A stretch of DNA of 64,000 nucleotides from Macrostomum lignano (GCA_002269645.1 NIVC01000059.1:1430002-1494001); one strand, 5' to 3'; positions 19,501 to 22,500 are shown, counted from the first letter of the stretch. The notes: generated by a model from the sequence alone, not told the origin. Made by a program: numbers and translations.

Positions 19501-22500
19501 GCAGAAGAGTTCACGGTGCTTTCTGAGGCTACCCAGATGTTTGATCCGGTCAAGACGATGTCTGAAATCGGCGAAAAGTCGAATACACGTCAGCTGTTTT
19601 GAGTGCAACCTCAAACAAAAATGTCATGCGAGTCTTACCTGGTCCGAGAAAGGCTCTTGAGTCAGCCGGGATTTTGTCGCCGATGCGGCCAAAGCTGTGA
19701 CTGATTTCTGATAGCTTCTCGGCTGCACTCTCCTGAAAAAGTAATAGCAAAATTTACCGTTGTTTCGATTAGAATTTGCGCCATCACAGCTGCTTCTTGC
19801 TTACCTGGGATTCAACTGTGACCTGATTGACTCTCTCTACAGGGATCGCGTTTTTCAAAGCATAATTCACTTGCTCAAGATCCTCAGGCGTGTCCACAGA
19901 GAAATTGGCTACGATTGAAATTATATTGCTTCGAAGCTGCAATAAAAAATGATCAAAATACACTCAGACTATTGGAAACGTTTTGCATTTCGCATTAAAC
20001 AACTATCTAATGCATCACAGTTTCCGCTTGAAAAAATTTCCTTGGCGTTTAAAACTTGCTGTAAAAAATGCGAAATCCAGAAATGATAAACCTTGTCTAC
20101 AAACTAGTCTTAAAGATTTTAAAATCTCTTACCCCGCTGGCTGACCTCCGTCATCCTGCTATAATAGTCCTCCGTCTTCTCAGCACTGGCATTGGCTCCT
20201 TCGGCATCCTCGTTCTTTGCATTCATCACGGATGCCAAGCACACGACAGTGGTGGCAGCCGCCTGTTGGTTTCCGCTTTGCAGGTGACGGTCCAAGTCGT
20301 CGTTTGATCCGTCAAAAATTGCAGTCAGCTTTTCGAGTAGGACGCTCGCCGGGATTGGAGGCGGATAAACCTGCATTTGTGGCCGAGGCTTAACATGTTA
20401 TATTTCTGCTATTTATATGTTTTTAGGCCACTGCTATCTGCTACTTACAATAACATCGAATATAAAAGCGATCTTATCTCCGATGCTATCGATAACGTTG
20501 ATGTAAGCATCAGACCTGAATCCATGTGTAGCAGAGCCAACAGGCAGCAGAACCGGAGGCGAAACGGCTGTTGGTCCATAGAACAACAGAATAGTTTGCT
20601 TGGTTCCTTTTGGTCGAATGCGATATTCGTACTTGAGGCTGTTTGATGTGGCGTTGAATTCCTGCCAGCCCCAGCATGAAATCTGATATTTGGTGATCAT
20701 AGCGTAGCCCGCAGTTGGATTGATGGTGCAGTTGCCTCCACTAGCAGGCATATTCATTAAAAATGTTTTTTTAACTGTAACCGGACCCTCTTGTCCGTAG
20801 CTTGATATTGACACCCGGATCAGGTAGACAATACCCAGAGTCATTGTGTTTGGCTTTCGGATCAGTGTTCTGCTTGTGAAACCTGAGCAAAAGGGTGTTT
20901 TTGTGATCATTGTGTTCCTTTCAGAAAGGAAATATTAATTTCTTTAATAAACGACTTACCCGACTCTGTGACATCACCCAAATTCTCGTAATTGATATCA
21001 GAGACTTTTCTCATTTCCCAAACGAAAGACAGACCCGAAAACTTTGTACCACAATTTTCTGTGCAATCCGCCAGGTAAACCAAAGGAATTGAGCCTCGTA
21101 CCCTTTCGGCACAGTTGCTAACACATCTGAAAATCAGATGAGCACGTTCAACCTCCTCATAGAACAAAAATCATGATTGTTCAGACAGATACCAATCAAT
21201 AGATGAAAAATTCTTACAAAATTCTCACAGACACCGGTCTCTGAGGCAAAATAAATATTTTCCAATCAGCAATGGCGCCACGCATATCCTTTGACAAAAT
21301 AACACGGATCAAGTACGTCTTATTGGGAAGCATGTGAAAGGTGCTAAGCATTAACGTAGCCATCTCGTTCTGCTCCATGAAGATTCCAATGCCGTTGCCA
21401 AAGCAGCCGGAATATCCTTCAAGACCTTGGCTCACAGGAATGCTAATCCGAGTTGCGACATTGTCAGGAAGTGACGGCAGCTCCGCCTCCTGCAGGCAAA
21501 TCCAGCGAAACGCCATGCCCGTCAGATTCCCATCCTCAACGTCCCAGTCCCGAGGCGACAGCTCCAGCCTGACAGTTTCGTTGTAGGCAGCGGAGGTCGG
21601 TGTTGACGCATTGTTGAAGCTCAGCGTCAGAGGCGTCTTCGTGATTTTGAGGTAAAACACGAACTCTGCAGACACTGGAGGCGTCACAGCAAACATGGAT
21701 AGGTTGAGTACAACCTTGTACAGACCATACCAGAGTGTGCGGTTCGGCACCTGCAGCAGAAACGAGTTACCGAGACTCAGACTGACTTCAGCTCCGGCTG
21801 CATTCAGAACTCGCCAGCGTCGATACGTGTTGCTCGTCTTTGTGCAGTTTAGCTCCGGAAGACCTTCAACGACGATCTCCTGAGACCTCATCAGCTGCAG
21901 AGGCCTCTCGGGATCCCACTGGGTCAGAATCCGACCAGCATGAGAAAAGTTCAGCTTTGGTTTGTCGCACATCCAGTCGAGTATAATTGCGAGAGTTTCG
22001 GCCGTGTCGTTGCTGACGTGGTTGAATGCTAGCAGAGAAGCCGAAAAGCCACCAAGACTTGGATAAACGTGAGAAAACGAAAACAACGTGTTGTTGTAAA
22101 AAATTTCAGTAAAATTGATGCCTCGAATATCAGAGTAGGGCTGACACAAAAATGGAATGCCAAAGCTGATCGATGTAGAGTCTCCAAAATCTACGACAAA
22201 ACAGCTGTTTGTGCCGAATCTGGTGATGTTAAGGAAGAAGACAGTCGCGTTCGATAAGAAGGCCGAACCGTTCGTTTTGAAGCTTCCGACTATGACAGCA
22301 TCGAGCACAATGTCTACAGAGATCGGAAGCGTTTGAAAGGAGGTGTCACGTGACTCTTGTTTTCGGAAAGCTTTATCGGAATATTTAAATCAGCAACTAG
22401 ACTCACCGACGGGAAACCCGAGGACTCCAACTCTGACCCGAGCGTCTCCATGGAAGCTGAGTGGTGACAGGACCAGGAACTTTGCGATCACAGGGTTCGG

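Follow-up and report, generated by a model that had tools for sequence, protein, structure and literature searches.

A candidate chimeric polycystin-1-like gene in Macrostomum lignano with a predicted splice acceptor formed by former PKD-repeat codons

One of two polycystin-1-like genes in the window (the whole stretch of 64,000 nucleotides of Macrostomum lignano DNA that was analysed) is probably chimeric, having arisen by a fusion in which codons of a PKD strand were put to use as a splice acceptor; judged from the sequence, we give this reading a probability of roughly 0.6. The C-terminal part of this gene (gene A), comprising PKD repeat iv, REJ, PLAT and an 11-TM polycystin channel, is an old paralog of the second gene (gene B), and its N-terminal part is a different set of exons carrying discoidin/F5-8C and C-type-lectin-like domains. 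Both parts would meet in a phase-1 intron of 93 nt, whose donor is the original end of a discoidin-module exon and whose 3′ 28 nt, including the pyrimidine tract and the AG, are leftover codons: they encoded the last beta-strand of a PKD repeat, now lost in A and kept in B and all relatives. The AG falls on GTA G AC (Val-Asp), the exact boundary between two PKD repeats, so that splicing would leave both the discoidin-like domain and the PKD repeat intact on either side of the join and restore the Asp. We infer that the gene originated by genomic rearrangement, most simply a deletion or an illegitimate recombination, with one breakpoint in an intron of an upstream discoidin gene and the other in the interior of the PKD-array exon of A, after which the next good in-phase AG would have been taken as acceptor.

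Genes A and B are two polycystin-1-like (PKD1/REJ-family) genes in the same tandem orientation, both on the minus strand. The predicted model of A covers 14796-~32000, and B extends from its stop at 55688 to 63999 and past the window edge, which cuts off its 5′ part; the 14 exons of B in the window provide 2295 open codons with Pfam matches to PKD, REJ, PLAT, Polycystin_dom and PKD_channel. Both gene models were built on splice junctions conserved between the two copies. A self-BLAST returned a single large duplicated block in the window, pairing A 14813-22342 with B 55704-63295. In A, the exon at 21218..22313 (minus strand) opens with (G)AC ATT (D I V L D A V) and encodes PKD repeat iv in full as well as the beginning of REJ, and the remainder (14796..21126, minus strand) consists of 12 further exons for REJ, the GAIN-region exon, PLAT, the 11-TM/polycystin channel and the C-terminal tail. 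From 22313 to the stop at 14796 the exon lengths of A equal those of B except for one exon (1095 nt versus 1094 nt in B). Most introns of the two genes measure 64-95 nt; intron 1 is much longer in B (451 nt) than in A (91 nt). The first exon of B in the window (63999-62171, 1829 nt) is open from the window edge onwards and matches Pfam PKD and REJ, in agreement with the sequence-only reading, which had placed the PKD repeats of B in one exon of more than 1.8 kb.

The domain assignments rest on profile matches at several points along the genes. The first part of the REJ domain (PF02010) scores 47-55 bits in both genes, and its continuation over B exons 2-4 reaches 106.7 bits at profile positions 210-450 when the spliced product is searched. 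PKD repeats (PF00801) N-terminal to REJ score 40 bits in B and weakly in the one repeat that remains in A; a Foldseek search of the PDB with the PKD repeat model matched generic tandem Ig-like and PKD-containing ectodomains. PLAT (PF01477) scores 24.7 bits (cut-off 23) in the spliced product of B exons 8-10, whose counterparts in A are of equal length and 95-98% identical. Polycystin_dom (PF20519, 82-83 bits) and PKD_channel (PF08016, 56-58 bits) are matched in both A and B. A GPS motif was not matched by Pfam in the exon product of 376 aa, even with the threshold relaxed to E<=1, and the region may be too divergent; the motif is present according to Pfam in one relative (P0075).

The evidence for the fusion centres on the point where the likeness between A and B ends. 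On the minus strand, A reads ...cacctcctttcaaacgcttccgatctctgtag up to and including the AG at 22315-22314, followed by AC, and B reads ...gtctccttccaaacgcttccgatctctgtagAC at 63294-63265, in frame for S F Q T L P I S V D. In a global alignment the edge of homology is abrupt at A 22341/B 63294, with ~97% identity downstream and none upstream; the protein-level match likewise begins at B residue 236, which corresponds to A 22341, and a search for B residues 1-235 found no trace of them anywhere near A. The proposed phase-1 intron of A (22314..22406, minus strand, 93 nt) runs GTGAGT...TCTCTGTAG and contains an in-frame TGA at 22392-22390. Its last 28 nt (22314..22341, minus strand) match B 63267-63294 (minus strand) at 27 positions and would supply both the polypyrimidine tract and the AG. 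In B the same bases lie in mid-exon and encode (S)FQTLPISV, which closes PKD repeat iii as its last beta-strand; the next residues are D I V F D A V. A splice from 22407 to 22313 is predicted to be in phase 1, to keep the frame and to rebuild the Asp codon as G/AC, giving the product ..VRVGVLGFPV-D-IVLDAV.. The match of 27 out of 28 bases continues, without loss of register, a stretch of about 1 kb that is 97% identical, which excludes chance as its cause. The sequence-only reading had described homology to B reaching into the intron of A and bases before the AG that are mid-exon codons for SFQTLPISVD in B; alignment and self-BLAST bear out the former, and both strings were found on the minus strand.

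Upstream of the junction, two exons of A carry discoidin sequence, as had been claimed. Exon X-1 (23088..23293, minus strand), which was also picked by the DP gene model, encodes the beginning of a discoidin domain (F5/8 type C) between the acceptor ..ttactccag/AT and the donor TCATCT/GTAGGT. Exon X (22407..22992, minus strand) encodes the end of this domain and a second discoidin-like domain and ends with ..VRVGVLGFPV plus G (phase 1); its 5′ boundary is tentative, an alternative acceptor putting the start at 23025. When the two exons are spliced together, F5_F8_type_C (PF00754) scores 37.4 and 38.9 bits (cut-off 28.2). The second, exon-terminal discoidin-like domain is weakly recognised by Pfam (E 0.001 in one search, no match in another), and the end of exon X coincides with its C-terminal edge. 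The same exon end is found in a 210-aa ORF call on a 1159-nt metagenome contig (P0063/L002), which is 35% identical to exon X and ends ..LAFLGFPVGE: its DNA reads GGC TTC CCA GTT G/GTGAGT, compared with GGG TTT CCC GTC G/GTGAGT in A, on a contig that extends 40 nt into the intron. The phase-1 donor of A is therefore an old, conserved exon boundary of the discoidin module that predates the fusion. Relatives of the last discoidin exon were also sought in a metagenome collection that does not include the sample of P0063; of 489 pattern matches none was confirmed.

Discoidin-like coding pieces on the strand of A occur only upstream of the junction (22357-22995, 25726-26019 and 27908-28042), and a search downstream of A for a remnant of the discoidin parent gene found none. 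The upstream region of A also contains weak C-type-lectin pieces (24406-24741 and 31220-31465). Models of the 5′ end of A and of many exons in this region are unreliable: the DP gene finder over-called tiny exons and its product gave weak additional Pfam matches; single ORFs upstream of the junction gave weak matches, too. Discoidin and PKD/REJ were combined in none of the 161 relatives retrieved (12 with discoidin only, 149 with PKD/REJ only), a count in which many entries are single-exon ORF calls that are unable to show a combined architecture.

The direction of the change follows from the relatives. An exhaustive HMMER search with the spliced junction region of A as query found 268 relatives, and most of the alignments start at query residue ~260-266, which is the junction; a word-index protein search with the spliced junction product gave a single match, 25% identical. 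The relatives come from flatworm, annelid, mollusc and echinoderm sources and from unbinned metagenome contigs, those with names belonging to Macrostomum, Dimorphilus, Argopecten and Acanthaster (the best being Macrostomum lignano at 37% identity). Among the 90 relatives matching repeats iii-iv of B, 72 align in one piece across the breakpoint and none has an intron-like break; in the other 18 the end of the PKD repeat is still visible before the breakpoint. The closest relative (P0002, 50% identity) and a dozen others were inspected, and all are continuous across the site; every inspected relative has the motif NCSNL[VL]S-x8-V-[DE]-I-[IV]-[LF]-D. Pfam profile coordinates on neighbouring repeats place the repeat ends at ..ISV of B, directly before the D. 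An AlphaFold model of B repeats iii-iv (mean pLDDT 93.8, from an alignment of 21 sequences) is a tandem beta-sandwich in which FQTLPISV/DIVF (F85-F96) forms one long strand leading from the end of PKD iii into the start of PKD iv. In the corresponding model of the A product, PKD iv has a pLDDT above 90 and the discoidin half below 50, the alignment of the latter containing one badly aligned homolog.

Since the relatives read through the site without an intron-like break and the residues form a strand of repeat iii in the model, the state of B is ancestral and that of A derived. That the intron is instead ancestral, B having lost it or having turned its 3′ end into exon, is scarcely credible: such a history would explain just why 28 nt that are intronic in A are exonic in B, and it is contradicted by the PKD strand conserved in the relatives that continue across the site, by the structure model, in which these residues are needed as the G strand of repeat iii, and by the further PKD repeats in the upstream ORF of B. 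We therefore rejected intron loss or exonisation in B on the continuous relatives and the model. Judged from the relatives and the predicted structure, the 28 intronic bases of A are what remains of the last strand of a PKD repeat otherwise absent from this gene, and the earlier proposal that coding sequence of the B type became the candidate acceptor of A gains its coding ancestry from these same two sources.

To rate the predicted splice sites, position weight matrices were derived without the junction intron, from the remaining 26 introns of the two genes. The junction donor ranks as the 10th lowest and the acceptor as the 5th lowest of 27, which puts the latter in the lowest fifth of the acceptors of the gene. 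All other nearby AGs score at most 0.74, and those within the 93 nt that might have served as alternative acceptors (22371, 22356 and 22354) score below 0 and were discarded; on these scores the AG at 22314 is the only usable acceptor nearby. The length of the intron lies inside the usual range of the gene. AGs of acceptor-like strength make up 21 of the 413 AGs in the exons of B, about one per 330 nt of coding sequence, so that a usable site close to a random break is uncommon, yet not rare. The equivalent codons of the closest relative, CCT GTT GAC, are without an AG, and the AG of A thus hinges on the synonymous codon GTA.

The identity between A and B is a mosaic, with 97-98% in 22341-~21374, ~19985-17250 and 16551-15013 and 56-72% in between. 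The 5′ tract of gene conversion (21374..22341, minus strand) has 26 mismatches in ~970 nt and a dS of ~0.04-0.14 and stops at the edge of homology; further conversion tracts with near-identity of A and B are located at ~19985-17250 and 16551-15013 (minus strand). The switch at ~21374 falls within one exon, whose last 41 codons are 51% identical at the protein level versus ~98% for the preceding 320. Outside the tracts, the exons at 21411-19685 have a dS of 0.5-1.4 and a dN/dS of 0.09-0.19; within them, dS is 0.03-0.18 and dN/dS since the conversions ~0.2 overall. Introns are 94-98% identical in the converted tracts versus 14-50% outside, where they are unalignable. According to these comparisons, A and B are ancient paralogs that have long been under purifying selection and carry at least three recently homogenised tracts.

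With one mismatch in 28 nt, the relic belongs to the 5′ conversion tract, and its near-identity therefore cannot date the fusion or the recruitment of the AG. The sequence-only reading had proposed that a constant receptor-channel chassis was fused to a different N-terminal array: codon reuse, direction and domain boundaries hold, but the chassis is not a fresh copy, being one of two old paralogs homogenised by conversion. Two histories fit the sequence and cannot be separated, namely an old fusion whose relic was later re-converted and a recent deletion into an already homogenised exon, the latter taking fewer events. A variant of the former, which we regard as improbable, holds that an old fusion had its own acceptor and that B-derived conversion or repair later overran the start of the exon, importing the AG. 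It would account for a relic that sits in a tract of such low dS when the paralogs elsewhere exceed a dS of 1, for the identity and reading frame that an old, freely evolving relic should not have kept, and for the dependence of the AG on GTA where the closest relative has GTT. Against it, conversion would need homologous sequence beyond the tract as well, and upstream of 22341 none exists, the tract would need to end by microhomology at exactly this spot, and a recent deletion in a homogenised exon yields the same data in one event.

Gene conversion also raises a more speculative, rather improbable idea, that the same 28 bases serve two genes at once, as a beta-strand in B and as a 3′ splice signal in A, and are kept in step by conversion. 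If so, the protein constraint of B (I-S-V-D) would preserve the pyrimidine tract of A, and the need of A for an AG would in turn fix the Val codon of B as GTA, GTT being the codon in the closest relative. Such a dual-use constraint across genes under concerted evolution would let the exon of a paralog "refresh" a young acceptor.

As assembled, A carries a single disruption in ~6.8 kb of coding sequence, a complex change that adds one nucleotide at 19294 (minus strand, GAGTT versus CAAC in B) in the 1095-nt exon before TM1, with a stop 48 codons further on. The stretches flanking it have 1011 and 1245 open codons. This frameshift would truncate the protein before its first TM segment. A tiny compensating intron can be discarded, as there are just two GT...AG spans at this place, of 16 and 26 nt. 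The extra base is either a mistake in the assembly, a polymorphism or an inactivation of very recent date. Of the 30 amino-acid differences that could be polarised, 13 are derived in B and 17 in A (p=0.58). This symmetry, together with the dN/dS of ~0.2, indicates that A was constrained until very recently and has not drifted for long; A may be intact and expressed in the living animal.

These data bear on an unlikely alternative, according to which A is a dead fusion: the deletion destroyed the gene, the GT...AG is fortuitous and unused, and the frameshift is the first sign of decay. The frameshift in an otherwise conserved exon, the in-frame TGA within the 93-nt segment and a modest acceptor of a kind that coding sequence offers at the frequency given above all agree with such a history. 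A gene that had been neutral throughout would, however, be expected to show a dN/dS of ~0.57 since the conversions, not a value equal to that of the old divergence, and it would not be left with one disruption only and substitutions without bias towards A. Moreover, the break lies at two domain boundaries with matching phases and a typical intron length, which fits a survivor of selection and not a random lesion. The same properties of the join speak against a mis-join of two loci at 22341/22342 in the assembly, which we hold to be very improbable. Paralogs that are 97-98% identical over kilobases are indeed prone to misassembly, and the extra base at 19294 might be a similar error, but mis-joins arise within shared sequence and not at its edge, and substitutions between A and B are scattered throughout, so that A is no collapsed copy. 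Fusion with use of the PKD-strand codons as acceptor thus stays our preferred reading of A.

A REJ-GPS-PLAT-TM core with variable N-terminal modules is known from the human PKD1 family, with PKD1, PKD1L1-3 and PKDREJ as members, and from the SpREJ genes of the sea urchin, ten in number (PMC1934368). The N-terminal modules listed there are C-type lectin, EGF, SUEL, WSC and PKD repeats, discoidin not being among them, and the sea-urchin genes include SpREJ3 and SpREJ4, which are alike downstream, and SpREJ5 and SpREJ6, which are alike upstream (PMC1934368). A and B share with this family the PKD repeats, REJ, PLAT, the polycystin domain and the 6-TM channel block; A differs by its discoidin (F5/8C) domains, found in none of the 149 retrieved PKD/REJ relatives. 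The suggestion of a modular family with swapped ectodomains is accordingly only partly upheld: variable ectodomains were already documented (PMC1934368), but a family-wide swap at this breakpoint finds no support among the 161 relatives retrieved, all of which lack the combination of discoidin with PKD/REJ.

The individual processes that would have shaped A have precedents. Intronization of parts of exons is regarded as an important contributor to intron sequence (PMC3488318, with reference to Irimia et al. 2008), and in A, too, former coding bases appear to be intronic now and to form a predicted 3′ splice signal. The difference is that in A only 28 nt are involved and the donor and the rest of the intron come from another gene, making the intron a fusion scar. 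Chimeric genes have also formed by partial duplication and illegitimate recombination, for example Hun in Drosophila (PMC1463047). Like Hun, A would be a gene fragment cut at a non-homologous breakpoint, with foreign sequence supplying the remainder; intergenic sequence became coding in Hun, however, whereas coding sequence became intron in A, and the partner paralogs of A are ancient and kept alike by gene conversion. The join in A further resembles phase-1 exon shuffling in being a phase-1 junction between extracellular domains. Exon shuffling has mostly been deduced from domain architectures, the breakpoints having long eroded. It is well supported that A is a new and unusually legible example of known processes and not a new type of process.

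The picture of known polycystin function and of intron origin is unchanged by this case. One caution that it carries is that near-identity of paralogs at a breakpoint can stem from gene conversion and is not to be taken as the age of a rearrangement. The value of A lies in a fusion scar that would be legible to the single base, with a donor from one module family and an acceptor from the last strand of a lost PKD repeat. If the junction is real in RNA, A would be a compact teaching and test case for the gain of ectodomains in the adhesion-receptor/channel genes of the polycystin-1 family, and it would add a discoidin-bearing member to that family.

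Gene-conversion tracts with sharp edges form a patchwork between A and B, ancient tandem paralogs of the polycystin-1-like PKD1/REJ family (14800–22341 versus 55690–63294), and one of these edges, at about 21374, is situated within an exon. In the long middle tract, certain single introns show lower similarity between the two genes (76% for 19804–19733 and 64% for 18232–18158), which suggests that several overlapping conversion events contributed to this tract. Intron 1 measures 91 nt in A (21217–21127) versus 451 nt in B (62170–61720); the additional 360 nt in B may represent an insertion or a mobile element. 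The A exon at 19561–18467, otherwise 98% identical to its counterpart in B, carries a complex +1 change at 19294 on the minus strand (GAGTT, where B has CAAC). The change shifts the reading frame of A, leading to a stop codon 48 codons on, and is the sole disruption across the ~6.8 kb coding sequence of this gene.

The closest relative found by HMMER search with the spliced junction region of A, P0002 (50% identity), is a PKD/REJ exon of animal type from L001 (JGI 3300040801, contig Ga0450804_0290657). The same protein sequence appears under accession MEE4247216.1 with the title [quoted passage not shown]; its bacterial label very likely results from erroneous binning, with a eukaryotic contig assigned to a bacterial MAG.

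The window also contains a Tc1/mariner-like element (40195–41568), delimited by inverted terminal repeats of ~165 nt (40195–40359 and 41405–41568, 87% identical), between which minus-strand ORFs weakly match the transposase-type domains HTH_38, HTH_23 and HTH_SB. Because its reading frame is broken into pieces, this copy is probably dead. Tandem repeats comprise a (CTAA)n microsatellite of 73 copies (35696–35986), an array of ~28 copies of a 33/37-nt repeat of CTGA/GTGA tetramers (46218–47224) and 25 copies of a 20-nt repeat with 93% matches (49727–50224).

GC content peaks locally at 53.7% between 8000 and 10000, versus 36–48% in the flanks; the minus-strand ORFs overlapping each other there had no Pfam matches. 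A Pfam search likewise returned no match for a kringle-looking ORF (44757–45050), which adjoins a C-type-lectin exon on the minus strand between A and B (45798–46106). C-type lectin domains (Pfam 61.5 bits, two stretches) are further encoded by a separate single-exon ORF on the minus strand (4448–5446), whose 333-aa product has a hydrophobic N-terminus. The surroundings of A and B are rich in extracellular modules of lectin type.
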